DNA from: Podarcis muralis
Lineage: Eukaryota
Direction: 5' to 3'
NCBI RefSeq assembly: GCF_964188315.1
Contig: NC_135657.1
Location: 78,182,001-78,246,000 of the forward strand
DNA length: 64,000 bases
Both the position numbers and the translations under genes were made by a program. The notes beneath the pieces are model-generated. The model worked only from the letters and a program-made list of their open reading frames with translations. It was not told where the DNA came from and ran no database searches. Below are positions 18,046 to 26,884 of the stretch, one piece after another. Each line of letters begins with the position of its first letter. The stretch's first letter is position 1.

Positions 18046-18417
18046 CAGTCTCAGCCTGAAGAGGAACACTCCTGTCACGTATTTAGAATATATGGCAACA
18101 TTTTGTTAGAGATCCTATTGGTGTGTTCTTCTCCTGAACTAGTTCAAAAATGGTCCAGCCTAAAAGAGCTGTTATGTGAAAAGCATTGTAATACAATTTC
18201 TGGTAGATATAGGAAGGACTATTAGCATCGTAGATGAAGCAACCTATACTTAGGAATGCTCAACAGCTGAATGCACAACCACCCCAGTTTTTGTATGTGG
18301 GTCCATGGAGAAAATACAGATCAAAAGCAAATTTACTACTATGGTAAAATAAAATAAAAATACAGGGAGTGTTGCAGCTTTCTGAATAGCCCAGACTATG
18401 AAAGAGCAAATTGATAT

Positions 18418-19174
18418 TGTCAGGGGTTCAGGAGCAGAGGGACAGGAGAGGGAGGAAGTAGAGACCGAGGGAGAGGAATCTGAGGGAGAAGTCAGCGAGG
18501 GTAGCCATCCGAGGTCTCTAAGTCTCTCCAGTGAATCAGAGGATTCACAGAAAGGGGCCCCAGTGGTCAGAGCCAGGGGGTTGCCAGAGGGAACACCCCA
18601 GGAAGGAGGGGCCAGAGGGGATTCAGAGAGCAGCAGCTGGAAATCGGGACCAACTTTCCCACCGGAGAGCAGTAAGGGGGAGGAGTCCCAAACATCGGCA
18701 GCAGGCAGCCTTCCGTCAGCGGAAGGACATGAGTCAGGGTTAGCCACGCCTGCATCAGAGAGCGAGGTAACGGTCAAAAGGAAGGTCAGGGGCAGCGCGC
18801 GCGCGCCAAGTTCAAATGTACAGGAGGGGGGCGCAATGGGCAGTCCGGAGAGAGAGCCGGGTCCCAAAGCCCGCCGGAGAGAAGGGGAGGAGTCCGAAGG
18901 GTCCGCTTCCGAGGCATCCCGGAAAGAAGGCACCCAGGGGGGTAGTAGGACCCAGAGGAGGAAGGAGAAACGTAGAAGGTGGAGTAAGGCTAGAGTCTTA
19001 AGCTGGTGTACAGGGGGCGGAGACTCAGACGAGGCTTCGCTGGTCTAGGGTTTAGACGTACAGACGCACGCTAGTGTTTGGAAATGGAAACTAAATGCCA
19101 ATAAAGACTTCTGTACAGTTCTAATGGCTAGCGTTGGTCTTCTGTGAGCTGAGACCGGGAGGCAGTCTCTGACA
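18418..19174 (+). repeat. 5' LTR (757 bp)
   Basis: Begins tgtcagggg, ends ctctgaca; matches 24205-24961 except C18524/T24311 and C19061/G24848 (by eye, supported by near-identical ORF translations in several frames). Confidence 0.98.
18996..19037 (+). promoter_or_regulatory. Predicted LTR core promoter and start of R
   Basis: TCTTAAG (TATA-like) about 28 nt upstream of 19027, the start site required by the self-priming model. Confidence 0.55.
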
Positions 19175-19176
19175 GT

Positions 19177-19187
19177 AAGCCTCGTCT
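19177..19187 (+). promoter_or_regulatory. Self-priming primer-binding site (no tRNA PBS)
   Basis: AAGCCTCGTCT, 2 nt after the 5' LTR, is the exact reverse complement of AGACGAGGCTT (19027-19037) in the LTR; no TGG-type tRNA PBS is present. Confidence 0.85.
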
Positions 19188-19286
19188 CACGTTATCATCG
19201 GTTTTCTTCGCCTCAAGCATCGCTAAGGAAGCGAGGCAGGGAGGGTGGAAGACTGGTGCCTTGCGAGCTCACAAGAGTCAGGCAAG

Positions 19287-20363
19287 ATGACTACAGAACA
19301 GAAAATAGCTTCCCTGCAAGAAGCGGTGACGCTACTCAACGCTGAAATAATCGCATCCAGGAAGAGAGAGGAAGAAGCGGCAGCTGCATGCAGAGATCTT
19401 CAAGCCAGGTTGGAAGGGCTTGTAAAGCAGGGGATCCCAGCACCCAGGTCCGAGGGGATCGGTTTGGGGAAGAGAGGAGGCAGCATTGTATCTCATTTTG
19501 ATGGGAATTTGCAGCAGTACCCCAATTTCAGAGCAGATGTGCTGTTTGCGCTGCAGCTGCTGGAAAGAGACTTTAGAGATGAGCGGGAAAAAGTGGGGTT
19601 TATTTTGTCTCATTTGCATGGGGACGCGAAATCATGGCTGCGCAACCTGTGGAGAGATCAGGATCCAGCGCTCCAAAGCGCAGATGCGTTCATTAAGGCG
19701 ATGGACTCCTGTTTCTTATCCAAAATAGACCTGGACATTGCCCGGAGGGACATATTTGGGCTAAGACAAGGGAAAGCCAGCGTAAGGCAGTATCATTCCC
19801 GGTTTTTTGCATTGGTCAACGCGCTGAATTGGGATAAGGATTCTCCGCCGGTTAGAGACCTTTTTTGGGAGGGTCTGAATGCACAGATCAAGGATGAGAT
19901 GGCAAGGGGAGAGAGACCCACCACCACTCAGCAAGTGGTTGAAAGAGCGTTGTCTATTGGGGTGAGGCAGGAAGAACGTCCGTGGAGCAAAGAAGAAGGG
20001 CGTTGGGGACGTTCACCAGCGAGAGTGCCCTCCCTCTTGCCCAGAGAGGCAGCGCGTGCGCAGTCCACGCCTCCACAGGGAGGGGGCGAGGAGCAGATGG
20101 AGATTGGCGGTGCTAGGGCTCACTCAGCTACCAGAGCCTTAACGCCAGGAGCAGTAAAATCGAAGCTGCCTAGAAGGAACAGGAAGTGTTATATATGTGA
20201 GAGTGCAGAGCACATGGCGAAAGAGTGTCCCCAGAGGAGTTTCAAGCACACTGCAGCTTCAGTGACAGTATTGGAAACAACTCAGCAGAGAGCACCACAG
20301 CAGGGAAACGACCAGGTCTGGCTGGAAGAGGAGGCACTGGGGCCCAGCCAGACGAGTCAGTGA
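19287..20363 (+). CDS. gag: Gag (358 aa from first ATG): coiled coil, retrotransposon capsid domain, CCHC zinc knuckle
   Basis: ATG with A at -3 (gcaagATG); FDGN...KVGFILSHLHGDAKSW capsid signature of sushi/PEG10-like Gags; CYICESAEHMAKEC = CX2CX4HX4C. Confidence 0.95.
   Translation: MTTEQKIASLQEAVTLLNAEIIASRKREEEAAAACRDLQARLEGLVKQGIPAPRSEGIGLGKRGGSIVSHFDGNLQQYPNFRADVLFALQLLERDFRDEREKVGFILSHLHGDAKSWLRNLWRDQDPALQSADAFIKAMDSCFLSKIDLDIARRDIFGLRQGKASVRQYHSRFFALVNALNWDKDSPPVRDLFWEGLNAQIKDEMARGERPTTTQQVVERALSIGVRQEERPWSKEEGRWGRSPARVPSLLPREAARAQSTPPQGGGEEQMEIGGARAHSATRALTPGAVKSKLPRRNRKCYICESAEHMAKECPQRSFKHTAASVTVLETTQQRAPQQGNDQVWLEEEALGPSQTSQ
20303..20362 (+). promoter_or_regulatory. -1 programmed ribosomal frameshift signal (G GGA AAC plus H-type pseudoknot)
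   Basis: Slippery heptamer 20303-20309 in the correct gag phase; 6-nt spacer; stem 1 GTCTGGCTGG (20316-20325) / CCAGCCAGAC (20344-20353); stem 2 CACTG (20335-20339) / CAGTG (20358-20362). Confidence 0.9.
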
Positions 20364-23300
20364 GGAAGTCCCCAGAGATTTTGCAGCCCACAGACCCCCT
20401 CCCGCCCAAGCCAGTGGTGCAGCTAACCGCATCGCTTCAGCTGCCCAATGGACTCACCTTAGAAGTGCCTATTACAATTGACTCTGGCAGTAACGCAGAC
20501 TTTATAGGATTGGAGTTCATTCAACAACACAACGTAGCATTACTGCCAGCCACACTGCCCCTGAAGGTTGTCACGGTGGATGGCAGGGAACTGCTAGGGG
20601 GGCAGGTGGTGCAGCAGACGCCGCCTATGGTGATGCAAATTGGGAATCACCGGGAAGTTATCAGTTTCAATGTCACCCAGCTGTCCGACACGCCTATAGT
20701 ATTAGGCATGAGTTGGCTGCACAGGCACAGCCCAGCATTGGCGTGGTACCAGCGCCACCTGACTTTTGGCTCCTCCTACTGTGCAGAACACTGCATTATA
20801 CCCAGCCCGGAAGGGGAAGAGGAGGACCCGCAGTTGCAGTTGGGCACGCTGCAAGCAGTACCCCACAAGTATGCGGAGTTTTTGGAGGTATTCTGCGAGA
20901 AGGAGGCGGACAAGCTACCCCCTCACAGACCCTATGATTGCAAGATTGACCTCCTGCCGGGGGCGACGCTGCCAACTGGGAAACTGTACTCCATGTCTGA
21001 GGATGAACTGCAAGAACTCAGGGAGTTCATAGATCACAATTTGAAGCGTGGGTTCATCCGGGAGTCGAAAGCGGTGGGAGGCAGTCCCGTATTCTTTGTG
21101 AAGAAGCGGGATACGCCCCAAAAAAGACTGGTGGTGGACTTCAGAATCTTGAATTCGAAAACCAAGCCCTCAGCTTTCCCCATGCCCAAGATAGACGACC
21201 TGCTAGCGACGGTGCGGAAAGGACGCGTTTTCACCAAGCTGGATCTACGTGGCGCGTACAACCTGATTCGCATGCGCGACGGAGACGAGTGGAAGACGGC
21301 CATGTTCACGCCACTGGGCACCTACGAATACAGAGTTATGCCCTTCGGATTACAAAATGGCTCTCACACTTTCCAAGCCTTTATGCATCACGTGCTGGCG
21401 GGGCTCCTTTACAAGAAGTGCGTATGCTTCCTGGACGACATCCTGATTTTTTCAGAATCGCGAGAGGCGCACGAGAGGGATGTCAGGGAAGTTCTGCAGA
21501 GACTGAAGGAGCACAGGCTGTACGCCAAACTGGAGAAGTGCCAGTTCGACGTGACGGGGGTGGATTTCCTGGGCTACAAGTTGTCGGACAAGGGGCTCGC
21601 CATGGACAGCGCCAAGGTTCGCGCAGTTTTGGACTGGAAGAGCCCACGCAATCGGAAGGAAGTCCAGCGGTTTGTCGGCTTTGCCAACTTTTACCGCAAG
21701 TTCATCAAGGGATTTGCCATGCAGACAGCGGCCATCACCGACACGCTCAGCTCCAAGAAGAAGAAATTCATCTGGACGGAGCAAGCGGAGCAGTCCTTTC
21801 AGAAACTCAAGCGTCTCTTCGCGTCCGAAGAGCAGCTGCTGCATGTGAATCCCAGCAGACCCATGAGGGTGGAGACGGACGCCTCAGACAGAGCCGTGGG
21901 AGCTGTCCTGTTGCAACAAGACCAGCAGGGGGACTGGAGGCCGTGCGCCTTCTACTCGAGGAAGCTCAGCAAGTCGGAGCAGAATTACACTATCTGGGAC
22001 AGGGAGTTGCTAGCCATACATGCAGCATTCAAGGCATGGAGGCACTTCCTCATCGGAGCCACACATACAGTGCAGGTCCACACGGACCACAAGAATCTGG
22101 AGTACTGGCGCACGGCTAGGTTCCTCAACCAGAGACACATTAGATGGGCAGAGTTCTTCGCGGACTTCGACTTCAAGATAGAGTACATCCCAGGCGACAA
22201 CAACGTGATGGCGGATGCATTGTCCAGAAAGCCGCAATACCTGGAGGAGGCGGCACCGTCGGCGGCCAAGCACATTTTCGCACCGGAAGCGTGGGCATGC
22301 GCGTCGGCAACCGTGGACCTGGACGCCGTACGTCGCGCGCTGCGGGAAGACCCCTTCGCACGGGCCAAGATGGAGGAGGTGCACAGGGGCACAGCGAGGG
22401 CCGACGAGTTCCAGATTCGCGATGGGTTGCTCCTCCACAAGGGAGCACTCTACGTGCCGGGAGATGACCTCCGCGCAAGGGTCCTGCAGCAGCTACACGA
22501 CGCTCCCACCGCAGGGCACTTTGGCAAAGAAAAGACTGTCGAACTCGTAGCCAGAGACTTTTGGTGGCCCAAGATGCGGGGGGAAGTAGCGGATTACGTC
22601 TCGAGATGTGACACCTGCCAAAGGGCCAAGTCAGTTCACAGACCGCCGGCGGGATTGCTGGAACCGCTGCAGACACCGTCTGAACCGTGGGAGAGGGTGG
22701 CCCTGGACTTCGTCACGGATCTGCCCAGCTCGAGGGGAAAGACAGCAGTGCTAGTGGTGGTGGACATGTTTACTAAGATGGCACACTTCATTCCGTGTGC
22801 GAAGGTAGCCACGGCAGAGCAGACCGCCAAACTGTTCATAGACCACGTGTTCAAGGTCCACGGTCTGCCACGGTCTATTCTTTCCGACCGGGGGCGACAG
22901 TTCATCTCGAACTTCTGGCAGAAGCTGATGGGCATTCTGAACGTCAAAGTCAATTTGGCGTCGGCGAGACACCCGCAGACCAACGGACAAGCGGAGAGGG
23001 TCAACGCCGTCATGCAGCAGTACCTAAGATGCTACGCCAACCAGCAGCCCACGACATGGGTGGACTACCTGCCGCTCGCCGAGTTCGCTTACAACAATAC
23101 GAAGCACGTGTCGACGGGGGTGACGCCGTTCTTCGCCAACAACGGGAGGCATCCCAGAACCTTCCCGGGTTTAGAGAGAGTGGGGGAGGGGGAGCCACAG
23201 GCAGCGGAGGCCTTAGCGTCGGAGTTGCAGGAGGTCCACGAACAGCTCAGGAGGCAGTTAGAACTAGCTAAGCACGCATACAAGGTGCAGGCCGACAGAC

Positions 23301-24835
23301 ACAGAAGAGTTGGGGAAGACATACAGGTGGGTGACTGGGTCTGGCTAGCAGCGCAAGCAGTGCCGACCAGATCATTAGCTAAGAAGAAGCTAGGACATAA
23401 GCAGCTAGGACCTTACCAAGTCCAGGCGCAGGTCAATCCAGTGGCCTTCCGGTTGGCTCTTCCGGAGGGTTCCAGAATGCATCCGGTGTTCCATAGATCG
23501 GTGCTCACGCCCTACAAAGCACCTCATAGGTTTCAGGAGCCAGACACCGCACCTGACCAGAGCAGTGAAGGGCCCAGAGTGCGGGGGCCGCCTAGGAAGG
23601 GACACATCAATGAGGTCACAGAGATTTTGGACTCCAGATGGGGGGAAGAGGGAGTAGAATATTTCCTAGCCAGAGAGGGTACCCCGGCCAGTGCCAACAG
23701 CTGGGTACCGGACTATGCCTTGGAGGAACCGCTGCTCAAAGAGGAGTTTCATGCCCTCTTCCCGCACAGGCCCATGCCAGCAGAGTATTTCGATGACTGG
23801 CTTTTCACACCCACTCTTTCAGCCAGCACATTCCTGGGGTTCGACTCGGACGAGGAACAGGCACCAGTCCCCAGCTCTCAGGTGGGTTCGCCACCGGGGT
23901 CTGCCTCAGACCACTCGTATTGGTGGGACGATCAACCAGAGGAGCAGTGGCGCAGGAAGTGGCTGAGGGGTCCTTGGATGGGACCACCCGAAGAGGGGGA
24001 GAGGGGCGAGACGGACATGGACGTGTTGGGGGACAACGTGGGGTTCGAGCATGAAGACAGAGAGATGGAAGCAGAGGAGAGCGACGTTGACGAGTACATG
24101 GGGGATGAACTGTATCCGGCAAGCACCCCCGCGACGACGGAGCACCCAGTACCCGCACCGGAAGGAGGGGAGGGGGGAAGGGGGGGCTTCGAGGGGGGGA
24201 TGGATGTCAGGGGTTCAGGAGCAGAGGGACAGGAGAGGGAGGAAGTAGAGACCGAGGGAGAGGAATCTGAGGGAGAAGTCAGCGAGGGTAGCCATCCGAG
24301 GTCTCTAAGTTTCTCCAGTGAATCAGAGGATTCACAGAAAGGGGCCCCAGTGGTCAGAGCCAGGGGGTTGCCAGAGGGAACACCCCAGGAAGGAGGGGCC
24401 AGAGGGGATTCAGAGAGCAGCAGCTGGAAATCGGGACCAACTTTCCCACCGGAGAGCAGTAAGGGGGAGGAGTCCCAAACATCGGCAGCAGGCAGCCTTC
24501 CGTCAGCGGAAGGACATGAGTCAGGGTTAGCCACGCCTGCATCAGAGAGCGAGGTAACGGTCAAAAGGAAGGTCAGGGGCAGCGCGCGCGCGCCAAGTTC
24601 AAATGTACAGGAGGGGGGCGCAATGGGCAGTCCGGAGAGAGAGCCGGGTCCCAAAGCCCGCCGGAGAGAAGGGGAGGAGTCCGAAGGGTCCGCTTCCGAG
24701 GCATCCCGGAAAGAAGGCACCCAGGGGGGTAGTAGGACCCAGAGGAGGAAGGAGAAACGTAGAAGGTGGAGTAAGGCTAGAGTCTTAAGCTGGTGTACAG
24801 GGGGCGGAGACTCAGACGAGGCTTCGCTGGTCTAG
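20303..24835 (+). CDS. pol: Pol (protease, RT, RNase H, integrase, chromodomain, long C-terminal tail), expressed as a Gag-Pol fusion of about 1850 aa by -1 frameshift
   Basis: ORF 20225-24835 is stop-free. PR DSG 20480-20488; RT FLDD 21428-21439; RH TDAS about 21875; IN HHCC 22496-22618; D22706, D22886, E22994 (D,D35E); GPY 23408-23416; chromodomain about 23606-23764. Confidence 0.97.
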   Translation, partial: GKRPGLAGRGGTGAQPDESVRKSPEILQPTDPLPPKPVVQLTASLQLPNGLTLEVPITIDSGSNADFIGLEFIQQHNVALLPATLPLKVVTVDGRELLGGQVVQQTPPMVMQIGNHREVISFNVTQLSDTPIVLGMSWLHRHSPALAWYQRHLTFGSSYCAEHCIIPSPEGEEEDPQLQLGTLQAVPHKYAEFLEVFCEKEADKLPPHRPYDCKIDLLPGATLPTGKLYSMSEDELQELREFIDHNLKRGFIRESKAVGGSPVFFVKKRDTPQKRLVVDFRILNSKTKPSAFPMPKIDDLLATVRKGRVFTKLDLRGAYNLIRMRDGDEWKTAMFTPLGTYEYRVMPFGLQNGSHTFQAFMHHVLAGLLYKKCVCFLDDILIFSESREAHERDVREVLQRLKEHRLYAKLEKCQFDVTGVDFLGYKLSDKGLAMDSAKVRAVLDWKSPRNRKEVQRFVGFANFYRKFIKGFAMQTAAITDTLSSKKKKFIWTEQAEQSFQKLKRLFASEEQLLHVNPSRPMRVETDASDRAVGAVLLQQDQQGDWRPCAFYSRKLSKSEQNYTIWDRELLAIHAAFKAWRHFLIGATHTVQVHTDHKNLEYWRTARFLNQRHIRWAEFFADFDFKIEYIPGDNNVMADALSRKPQYLEEAAPSAAKHIFAPEAWACASATVDLDAVRRALREDPFARAKMEEVHRGTARADEFQIRDGLLLHKGALYVPGDDLRARVLQQLHDAPTAGHFGKEKTVELVARDFWWPKMRGEVADYVSRCDTCQRAKSVHRPPAGLLEPLQTPSEPWERVALDFVTDLPSSRGKTAVLVVVDMFTKMAHFIPCAKVATAEQTAKLFIDHVFKVHGLPRSILSDRGRQFISNFWQKLMGILNVKVNLASARHPQTNGQAERVNAVMQQYLRCYANQQPTTWVDYLPLAEFAYNNTKHVSTGVTPFFANNGRHPRTFPGLERVGEGEPQAAEALASELQEVHEQLRRQLELAKHAYKVQADRHRRVGEDIQVGDWVWLAAQAVPTRSLAKKKLGHKQLGPYQVQAQVNPVAFRLALPEGSRMHPVFHRSVLTPYKAPHRFQEPDTAPDQSSEGPRVRGPPRKGHINEVTEILDSRWGEEGVEYFLAREGTPASANSWVPDYALEEPLLKEEFHALFPHRPMPAEYFDDWLFTPTLSASTFLGFDSDEEQAPVPSSQVGSPPGSASDHSYWWDDQPEEQWRRKWLRGPWMGPPEEGERGETDMDVLGDNVGFEHEDREMEAEESDVDEYMGDELYPASTPATTEHPVPAPEGGEGGRGGFEGGMDVRGSGAEGQEREEVETEGEESEGEVSEGSHPRSLSFSSESEDSQKGAPVVRARGLPEGTPQEGGARGDSESSSWKSGPTFPPESSKGEESQTSAAGSLPSAEGHESGLATPASESEVTVKRKVRGSARAPSSNVQEGGAMGSPEREPGPKARRREGEESEGSASEASRKEGTQGGSRTQRRKEKRRRWSKARVLSWCTGGGDSDEASLV
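24161..24204 (+). promoter_or_regulatory. Polypurine tract, lying inside the pol ORF
   Basis: gaaggaggggaggggggaagggggggcttcgagggggggatgga abuts the 3' LTR. Confidence 0.85.
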
Positions 24836-24961
24836 GGTTTAGACGTAGAGACGCACGCTAGTGTTTGGAAATGGAAACTAAATGCCAATAAAGACTTCTG
24901 TACAGTTCTAATGGCTAGCGTTGGTCTTCTGTGAGCTGAGACCGGGAGGCAGTCTCTGACA
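24205..24961 (+). repeat. 3' LTR (757 bp)
   Basis: Direct repeat of 18418-19174 at offset 5787; preceded by a polypurine tract, followed by TSD GATAT. Confidence 0.98.
24887..24892 (+). terminator. LTR polyadenylation signal AATAAA (5' LTR copy at 19100-19105)
   Basis: Hexamer about 70 nt from the LTR end, downstream of the pol stop codon. Confidence 0.8.
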
Positions 24962-24980
24962 GATATGAACTTACAGAAGC

Positions 24981-25324
24981 CAGGGACGCGGACTTATAAA
25001 AAATATTGGGGGGGCCCGGGAAAGCTCATGAATAATAAATAAGCTCATGAATATGCAAATAAAGTGGCGCCGCCTCCTCGTGAGTGAATAGGGGAGAGCG
25101 CTGCGCCTATTAATCAGCTCCAAAGGAAATTGGGTGGAGCTTTTGCTCGGGAGGGAGGGCAGGAGGCATGCAGCCCGCCCCTCCCTGTGCATTTTGGGCT
25201 GGGAGAGGGGCGGCGATGGCGCTCTGCTGGAGGGGCGCCGGAGATTATTGGGGGGCGGAGCCCCCCCAAATGAATTTTTGAGGGGGCTCGGGCCCCCTCA
25301 AGCCCCATTGGGTCGGCGCCTATG
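24981..25324. mobile_element. hAT MITE (344 bp)
   Basis: Perfect 8-bp TSD ACAGAAGC (24973-24980, 25325-25332); imperfect TIR CAGGGACGCGGAC vs CATAGGCGCCGAC (9/13). Confidence 0.85.
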
Positions 25325-26884
25325 ACAGAAGCTATCAGCTGTGCTGCTTGTTCCATAAAGTTGTACTAATGTTTGAAGTGACTAAATGGGTCTGAGCCAT
25401 TACTCAGAAGCAACAGGATAATAGGGTATTGACAGCAGCATTCATTAATTTGATTTCTTACTGAACACTATGAGTGGACATGCTACAGTAGTTGGATCCT
25501 CATTTCAGATGCCTGTACATATTGATAGGAAATAAAGGGAAAATTACAGCACTGAGCATTGCCGCAATGCAGGAGATGAGCTAATGGAACATCACTGGGC
25601 AGGCATCTCAAGCAAGTTGATTGCAAAAGAAGAGAAGCCAGCTTGTTGTCAGCTCCAGAAGGGTGCAACCTCCCCCCCCCCCCCCCAGTGACTGTGATCA
25701 AGACAGTGACGAGCCACTTCACTGAAGCTTGAATGCTAAGACTTGGGTTTGCCCTCCCACACACTTTGGGTGGGCAGACAAACCACAGACTGTCATTTGC
25801 AGAGTCAAAAAGCACTGGGTACAGCATTTAATTACTGTGTTAACACTTGGGAATGCTTTCTGTGCCAAGAGCCAGTTGCGGAGGGTTGGTGGTACTCGGC
25901 TGTCCTTTCACTACAGCATAATAACAGGATAAACCTGCACCTGGGGTTGAAGCTATGCAAGTGAGAGTGCAGGGATGTGTTACCAAACGTCATTCCCTAT
26001 GACAAAGCAAAGGTGCAGGTTTTTTGCCTTACTTGTCCTATTGTTCCTTTGCTCTCCTTGGAAAAATGTTGTTCTTGGTAGTTCTGTGTGGCAACAGTAA
26101 AGGATTTTCACAGTCTGAGCTTGGGTGACCAGGCCTTCTGTTCTTTTTAACACTTCTGTGGAAGGGAATTTTATTACCCTTGTTGCTTCACAAACCTCAA
26201 ATCTCTCTTTTACACAACTCTGCTCATTAGAATGCCTGTAGGGCAGCCTCTTCTTGGCCACCAAGATATTATTTGGACTATATCTCCTTCATCTTTGACC
26301 ATTGACTATGCTGGTGATGATCTCAGGACTCAAGGTTGTGGGAGGCTGAAGGCTGCTGTAGGAGGCTTTGTAGCCTAAGGTGAAGGACAAGATGGCGCCC
26401 TTCACCAGTACACATACAGAAGCTGACTGGACTGGTAGATGAGACTCACTTTGACACAAGCATCCTTCCATACTTTAAGGGGTACAGTGCATGCTGTGAG
26501 GCACACACAGTTTTGTCTTCCTGCAGAGGGGAATGGCTGGAGCAACAGCCAGGAGAGCTGCCACTGCTGCCCTTCAACATCTGCCACCTGAGGTGGCTGC
26601 CTAATGATAGGGTGAGTCCAGTGTGGAGGTTTCCATGTATGGAGCTGTACATTTGGTAATGAACCCTACTATTGCAGCTGTATGAGCAACATGCATCCAT
26701 AGCTAATGTAATTTGTAGATAGTGCTTGCTCCCACCCCATCCTGCCCTGCAAACACACACCTAATCAGGCACATATCAAGTATTTGGAATGCTCAAAAAG
26801 GACTATTAGCACTAAATCATTTGGATACTTAAGTTCTCAGTAAGTATATTTTACATAGCAAATCTGGGGGTTTTCCCATTAGGA

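Follow-up and report, generated by a model that had tools for sequence, protein, structure and literature searches.

A lizard Ty3/Gypsy element extends its pol frame through the polypurine tract into the 3′ long terminal repeat under purifying selection

In the textbook long terminal repeat (LTR) retrotransposon, coding ends before the polypurine tract (PPT) and the U3 region of the LTR is purely regulatory. The element described here lies at 18418-24961, from LTR to LTR, within a window of 64,000 nt (the whole stretch of DNA that was analysed) taken from contig NC_135657.1 of the lacertid lizard Podarcis muralis, and its sequence is best read as that of a chromovirus of the self-priming kind (Ty3/Gypsy, Tf1/sushi type), intact and inserted recently. 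Its pol reading frame runs on past the chromodomain at the integrase C-terminus, through the PPT and into the 3′ LTR. Comparison with related copies demonstrated that this tail truly extends the coding sequence of pol, and that purifying selection acts on its amino acids with about the strength seen in gag.

All features of the element are on the forward strand. It is framed by two identical copies of a 5-nt target-site duplication, GATAT, at 18413-18417 and 24962-24966, which directly abut the ends of two LTRs of 757 bp (TGTCA...TGACA; 5′ LTR at 18418-19174, 3′ LTR at 24205-24961). The insertion is young, because the LTRs differ at only 2 positions in their alignment and the GATAT duplication is present. 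The TG...CA ends together with the short duplication are those of an LTR retrotransposon, and the order of the Pfam domains, gag followed by protease, reverse transcriptase (RT), RNase H and integrase (IN), is that of Ty3/Gypsy elements (Metaviridae). The gag open reading frame (ORF; 19245-20363, first ATG at 19284) matches Retrotrans_gag, Ty3_capsid and zf-CCHC in Pfam, that is, a capsid-like domain and a CCHC zinc knuckle. It overlaps by 139 nt (20225-20363) with pol, an unbroken ORF of 1536 codons in the −1 frame relative to gag (20225-24835), which appears in the mechanical ORF list and translates free of stops. Pfam placed along it the protease (20471-20773), RT (21098-21583), RNase H (21773-22168), the integrase zinc finger (22463-22633), the integrase core (22682-22975) and an SH3 domain of the Tf2 type (SH3_Tf2-1; 23330-23515). 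A degenerate chromodomain follows at 23612-23752, at the integrase C-terminus. The poly(A) signal AATAAA at 24887-24892 was located by an invariant CAATAAAGAC block. The closest proteins, at most 96% identical, are Podarcis gene models (P. muralis and P. lilfordi) that bear the name "Gypsy retrotransposon integrase-like protein 1". No second copy of the element was found within the window.

The position of the transcript ends within the LTR was approached through the primer. The sequence AGACGAGGCTT at 24814-24824 (LTR positions 610-620), which falls within the final codons of pol, is exactly complementary to AAGCCTCGTCT at 19177-19187. The latter is a primer-binding site (PBS) of the self-priming (Tf1/sushi) type that begins 2 nt past the 5′ LTR and pairs with the LTR at 11 of 11 positions. 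The copy of the self-primer in the 5′ LTR (19027-19037) would be the first 11 nt of the transcript and the start of R. In further family members this LTR position is occupied by AGACGGAGCTT or AGATGGAGCTT and the PBS is changed to match exactly, so that the 11/11 complementarity is kept through three sequence variants within the family. A sibling Podarcis family (L004 and L005) and an element of the amphisbaenian Rhineura floridana (L007) use unrelated 10-11-mers, likewise perfectly complementary, and the PBS begins 2 nt past the LTR in the window as well as in L001, L002, L003, L004, L005 and L007. This covariation of primer and PBS constitutes strong evidence for self-priming of the Tf1 type, a known trait of the Tf1/sushi group (PMC6317226).

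The first-pass annotation of the window had placed the pol stop codon inside R, past the self-primer, and this was borne out with the start of R taken at the primer. With self-priming of the Tf1 type, the transcript begins with the primer; R would therefore start at 24814 and U3 would occupy 24205-24813, so that pol would cover all 609 nt of U3 and stop 19 nt into R, at the TAG codon at 24833-24835. The TATA box that had been predicted fared less well. No canonical TATA was found in the LTR, where only TCTTAAG, rich in T/A, was seen some 31 nt upstream of the primer; a scan for bacterial-type promoters gave no match and is irrelevant to a eukaryotic LTR.

The ORF list, the translation and the LTR alignment confirmed that the pol frame stays open for 356 codons past the chromodomain (23765-24832), across the PPT and 209 codons of the 3′ LTR. 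The part of the tail upstream of the LTR (23765-24204, 147 codons) consists of a conserved aromatic/acidic block followed by a variable acidic stretch, and its end coincides with the G-rich PPT region (24160-24204), a purine run abutting the LTR that is translated as a Gly/Glu-rich stretch. The LTR-encoded part (24206-24832, 209 codons) is rich in E, S and G, with a near-invariant Ser/acidic cluster, and ends in basic clusters, the order of segments that had been described from the translation. Within the same 1068 nt the other two forward frames contain 6 and 14 stops, and the three reverse frames 14, 2 and 7. From the base composition of the region (G 39%, A 26%, C 22%, T 13%), the probability of 356 open codons is about 3e-6, and none of 20000 shuffles was fully open. 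The length of the ORF is thus not owed to the purine-rich composition. The 209-codon open frame is present in both LTRs, and its 5′ copy would be untranslated if transcription starts at R. At the other end of the element, a forward ORF of 216 codons (18398-19048) begins at an ATG that lies in the host flank, 20 nt ahead of the 5′ LTR. This ORF is simply the LTR copy of the pol tail and could be mistaken for a host gene by a gene caller. Directly downstream of the element, the window at 24990-25330 shows repeated GCTCATGAATA words, AATAAA motifs and G/C-rich runs, possibly another repeat that hosts the insertion.

Whether an open frame is used as protein can be read from the way in which related copies diverge. 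The ratio of non-synonymous to synonymous divergence (dN/dS) was calculated by the Nei-Gojobori method in the pol frame between the window and related copies. These came from L001 of P. muralis, where several lie nested, and from L002 and L003 of P. lilfordi. The tail was available in five further copies, whose DNA is 75-94% identical to that of the window. Copy A (94% identity) has no indel and the same stop, copy B2 (75% identity) has a single indel of 39 nt and is open through to the same stop, and the remaining three are decayed to differing degrees. In the LTR-encoded tail dN/dS was 0.19-0.25, and in the tail upstream of the LTR 0.34-0.57, compared with 0.14-0.19 in gag, 0.09-0.19 in the linker and chromodomain and 0.05-0.08 in RT and IN. 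In contrast, both off frames of the same tail alignments gave 0.7-2.0. Substitutions in the LTR part between the window and B2 fall 33/49/89 on the three codon positions (p 5e-7), and the third-position excess in the diverged pairs has p values between 1e-5 and 5e-8. Within the same pairs, the LTR part and RT/IN have equal synonymous divergence (dS; 0.47-0.92 and 0.47-0.99, respectively), and it follows that no blanket constraint at the nucleotide level mimics coding. The diverged pairs are 80-88% identical at codon positions 1 and 2 of U3, 70-79% identical in the noncoding R-U5 past the stop and 55-72% identical at position 3 of U3.

Conservation of the frame was equally evident when LTRs were considered on their own. 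The full frame of 209-211 codons is kept in 11 of 16 LTR copies (5′, 3′ and solo LTRs), some of which are only 73-82% identical to the window. Further, 17 distinct tail sequences of 349-368 aa (the window's own and those of 16 database proteins) run uninterrupted from the chromodomain to the last residue, and they end in the same way as copies A and B2. No DNA is on record for two proteins known from UniRef only, P0002 and P0003. Stop avoidance and dN/dS by frame had been set beforehand as the check on the first-pass annotation, and the contrast between the pol frame and the off frames, together with the retention of the frame among the LTR copies, speaks for it; neither frequent stops in young copies nor a dN/dS near 1 was found.

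Selection is unevenly distributed along the tail. The lowest windowed dN/dS (0.08) is found at its start, at 23747-23818, where the first 24 codons have values of 0.08-0.12 and continue those of the chromodomain. The C-terminal basic part (24611-24826) shows 0.14-0.28 with a high proportion of synonymous differences (pS). Constraint is weakest in the acidic linker before the PPT (23819-24142) and around 24431-24538. Apart from those in the PPT and the LTR terminus, synonymous sites vary freely: windowed synonymous divergence drops to about 0.1 over the PPT and the first ~45 nt of the LTR, against 0.3-0.6 elsewhere in U3, as expected for the plus-strand primer and the LTR end recognised by integrase. 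In addition, the LTR contains short blocks of complete nucleotide invariance. Across 10 LTR lineages these are LTR 1-23, 125-138, 388-401, 587-594, 597-606 (just upstream of the primer) and 682-691, and the invariant TGGTGTAC and GGGGCGGAGA blocks are present in the LTR. Those inside the coding U3 correspond to window positions 24329-24342, 24592-24605 and 24791-24810, and their third codon positions are invariant as well. The pair at 24791-24810, which contains a GGGGCGG run, adjoins the inferred transcription start on its upstream side. The internal blocks are candidates for promoter elements embedded in the coding U3, whose role as a promoter is inferred from the anatomy of the LTR.

The protein encoded by the tail resembles nothing outside the lizard elements. 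Pfam found no family in the tail alone, a sequence search of the PDB gave no match up to E = 1, and phmmer against 1.84 billion representative proteins returned only five matches and no host gene that could have donated it; three of the five carry Podarcis names and two are closely matching contigs from sequencing runs. A search for a tandem-repeat origin of the low-complexity middle found only the short G-rich repeats of the PPT. The best-conserved parts are the aromatic/acidic block and the C-terminal basic clusters, with the invariant and near-invariant residues falling in the Ser/acidic cluster, a short basic cluster and the final basic stretch. AlphaFold2 modelling of the chromodomain plus tail with 13 relatives gave low confidence throughout (mean predicted local distance difference test score, pLDDT, 40.8) and two short helices in the tail, at pol residues 1238-1247 and 1517-1524. 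The model gives weak evidence that the tail is intrinsically disordered. It had been proposed that U3 is both a promoter and the coding sequence for a disordered integrase extension, with a putative role in nuclear import, chromatin tethering or a histone-chaperone-like acidic function; the coding part of this proposal stands, with a selected frame that spans the PPT, all of the inferred U3 and 19 nt of R, and the proposed disorder would fit the low-confidence model. The chromodomain reported ahead of the tail corresponds to a chromodomain-like segment at 23612-23752 that scores under the Pfam cut-off (Chromo, E 0.0012, 19.2 bits, cut-off 25.1); sibling families score PF00385 at the same place. 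The family with the weakest chromodomain has the longest tail, and the sibling families and the Rhineura element keep a recognisable chromodomain.

Relatives of this integrase in a large protein collection end a median of 19 residues past the chromodomain, whereas the window family adds 356. Comparable extensions were found in two other families. In the sibling Podarcis family, whose integrase is about 55% identical and whose tail has 166-194 residues, the ORF crosses the PPT and the same GA|TGTCAGG junction, continues for about 100 codons into the LTR and stops just past its own self-primer; L004 and L005 are almost identical, which makes dN/dS uninformative for this family. The Rhineura floridana element (L007, 13593-19120) looks intact, with an LTR of 573 bp and a CCCGA duplication. 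Its pol ORF extends 87 codons into the LTR and stops about 60 nt before the self-primer, and its tail is Ser/acidic and then basic at the end. Pol-like similarity continues downstream of the 3′ LTR of this element, at L007 19121-22391, and the element may sit inside or next to an older copy. The three tails have no demonstrable homology at the sequence level, and a profile-profile comparison of the window-family and sibling-family tails was not significant (probability 2.3%, over 28 C-terminal columns). The presence of the layout in three families indicates that the architecture is common to lacertoid chromoviruses, with a fast turnover of sequence and an LTR-encoded length of 87-209 codons. 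Within the window family, the P. muralis locus L001 (OZ076972.1, 29881387-29906735) is a 25-kb nest of at least four family copies and solo LTRs, in which one solo LTR is inserted in the chromodomain region of another copy; the nest suggests clustering or a preference for its own kind as insertion target. The annotation of P. lilfordi calls the tail a separate 'hypothetical predicted protein' beside a truncated pol (L002 11543-12667, 374 aa; L003 13053-14294, 413 aa). These separate calls are an annotation artefact of the LTR-encoded extension, in copies with a broken pol.

The evidence for selection leaves several ways in which the frame might be explained. The alternative that survives best is that the tail is translated and selected but acts as a separate accessory protein, either cut off by the protease or made from a spliced or subgenomic RNA, in the manner of the U3-overlapping accessory genes of retroviruses. 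In its favour, the tail resembles no part of an integrase, the poorly constrained linker at 23819-24142 could hold a cleavage site, and gene callers did split the tail off in the two P. lilfordi loci; however, these split genes are the ones that belong to copies with a broken pol, no open copy has a stop between chromodomain and tail, and the first 24 codons of the tail are constrained like the chromodomain and in continuity with it. We regard a separate protein as unlikely.

A purely RNA-level cause is far less probable. According to this explanation, the frame is kept open because translation up to R leaves a 3′ UTR of ~60-80 nt instead of ~700 nt and lets the RNA evade surveillance. The stop does lie near the poly(A) signal (24833 versus 24887), and regardless of how long U3 is, the ORF of each of the three families terminates within R or close to it. 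Such a cause acting alone predicts stop avoidance with a dN/dS near 1; the observed values are those of a constrained protein (0.19-0.25) with a normal dS. An RNA-level benefit may add to selection on the protein but cannot replace it. That the frame is a functionless by-product of the purine-rich, T-poor composition, or of a recent loss of a stop, has next to no probability: T makes up only 13% of the region and an antisense frame is nearly open too (2 stops in the window, none in copy B2), but the chance estimate of about 3e-6, the persistence of the frame across 25% DNA divergence with a triplet indel, the confinement of the third-position excess and low dN/dS to the pol frame and the recurrence of the layout in two other families all speak against it. 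Equally negligible is the idea that the selected gene is the antisense ORF at 23932-24720 (reverse strand, 262 codons) and the sense frame its mirror, since although this ORF figures in the mechanical list and its frame has a dN/dS of 0.34-0.39, the sense value is lower in every pair (0.25-0.28), the window has two antisense stops over the tail and none in the sense frame, which is moreover continuous with pol, and, where a sense frame seldom contains any of the three codons complementary to stops, its co-phased antisense frame should appear as a mirror of it.

Taken as a whole, the tail is best explained, with good though incomplete confidence, as a translated and selected extension of the integrase of a self-priming chromovirus. 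The full-length RNA of such an element, which is both genomic RNA and Gag-Pol message, runs from R of the 5′ LTR to R of the 3′ LTR and so contains the PPT and the 3′ U3. A later stop would simply lengthen Pol, because the 3′ end of the RNA holds the PPT, U3 and R. After the usual −1 shift from gag, the ribosome would read on through the PPT, the complete U3 (609 nt) and 19 nt at the start of R, and the product would be an integrase with a C-terminal extension of 356 residues behind the degenerate chromodomain. The tail may stay on the integrase as a disordered module whose conserved aromatic/acidic start, together with the basic clusters at its C-terminus, would help to import the integration complex into the nucleus and/or to tether it, and it would perhaps compensate for the degenerate chromodomain. 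In the 5′ LTR, U3 would then act as promoter DNA and, at the same time, in the 3′ LTR as coding RNA.

Several points weigh against this explanation or narrow it. The database proteins are gene models chosen for openness, the unbiased count being that of the DNA copies, and only five independent DNA copies of the whole tail were available, some of them from one nested cluster. In the fully invariant blocks (for example, LTR 125-138 and 388-401) constraint on protein and constraint on DNA are inseparable. The U3/R boundary depends on the analogy of the self-primer with that of Tf1, and transcription start, translation and protein product alike are read from the sequence alone. The AlphaFold2 alignment was shallow (13 sequences) and the chromodomain itself was poorly modelled. 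The putative role in nuclear import or tethering is inferred solely by analogy with the tails of other LTR-retrotransposon integrases, and the protease could remove the tail from the integrase.

A broader reading of the three families can be put forward tentatively. The U3 of these lizard chromoviruses may be a nursery for new protein sequence, in which the pol stop moved past the PPT and the tail grew with U3: the LTR encodes 87 codons of it in the Rhineura element, about 100 in that of the sibling Podarcis family and 209 in the window family, each ending at or near R. If this were true, these elements would possess a fast-evolving, family-specific module for targeting or import, encoded in DNA that must also work as a promoter and as the LTR end recognised by integrase, and they would offer a natural system in which a single sequence is constrained at once as promoter, as att site, as primer and as protein.

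The selected tail of the window family has consequences of its own. Protein-coding and selected sequence makes up 83% of the LTR, and one and the same sequence serves as the end of the integrase substrate, as primer for replication, as presumed promoter and as protein. In the hands of annotation pipelines, pol will be truncated or its tail called a 'hypothetical protein', as has happened in P. lilfordi. Each of the 11 LTR copies that keep the frame carries a start-less open frame of 209-211 codons, and such solo LTRs can find their way into gene sets as contaminants or supply exons. Between lineages, these LTRs do not satisfy the neutrality on which dating by LTR divergence depends. Further, a lineage-specific integrase tail beside a decayed chromodomain is a candidate determinant of insertion sites in lizard genomes.

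Coding sequence that overlaps an LTR is known from other systems, and the element can be compared with each of them. In HIV nef and MMTV sag, the U3 DNA is also coding, but these are separate ORFs with their own starts and spliced messages, whereas the window frame is continuous with pol and no stop separates them. The first-pass annotation had given LTR-overlapping genes as known in the form of such accessory ORFs, a background that is incomplete. Yeast integrases offer another parallel: Ty1 has a tail for nuclear localisation and Pol III tethering and Ty5 a targeting domain, both encoded upstream of the PPT. Like the window tail, those of the yeast Ty elements are poorly conserved, probably disordered C-termini with short basic or targeting motifs, and no sequence similarity between them was found. 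With the Tf1/sushi group (fission-yeast Tf1 and the vertebrate sushi-type elements) the window element shares the domain order, the SH3_Tf2-1 domain and an 11-nt self-primer at the start of R, complementary to the PBS, with a sub-threshold chromodomain in the place of theirs. A description of an LTR-encoded integrase tail in a vertebrate element was not found in the open-access literature, which is no proof of its absence.

The closest precedent, on a smaller scale, comes from the centromeric retrotransposons (CRM) of plants. In the chromoviruses of CRM group A, the polyprotein crosses the PPT and enters the 3′ LTR, where a C-terminal, putative targeting part of the integrase is encoded (PMC3059260). 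An LTR-encoded integrase C-terminus has also been found in Beetle and some Bingo elements of Beta vulgaris (PMC3605345) and noted for coffee (PMC5818461). The window element is like CRM group A in that its ORF continues past the PPT into the 3′ LTR, there for 209 codons. The two differ in several respects. The LTR-encoded piece of CRM is a CR motif that replaces the chromodomain, whereas the window element has a weak chromodomain upstream of the PPT, to which the LTR adds 209 residues. The PBS of CRM matches tRNA-Met, whereas that of the window element, judged by complementarity to its own R, is of the self-priming type. The protein-library search detected no similarity of the window tail outside lizard elements, and it is set apart from CRM by the published descriptions. 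Finally, the window element belongs to a vertebrate host, and its ORF takes in the entire inferred U3 before ending in R. In conclusion, this kind of feature is already known in plants, and what sets the present case apart is the vertebrate host, the self-priming group, the addition of the tail behind a chromodomain and its extent over the whole of U3.

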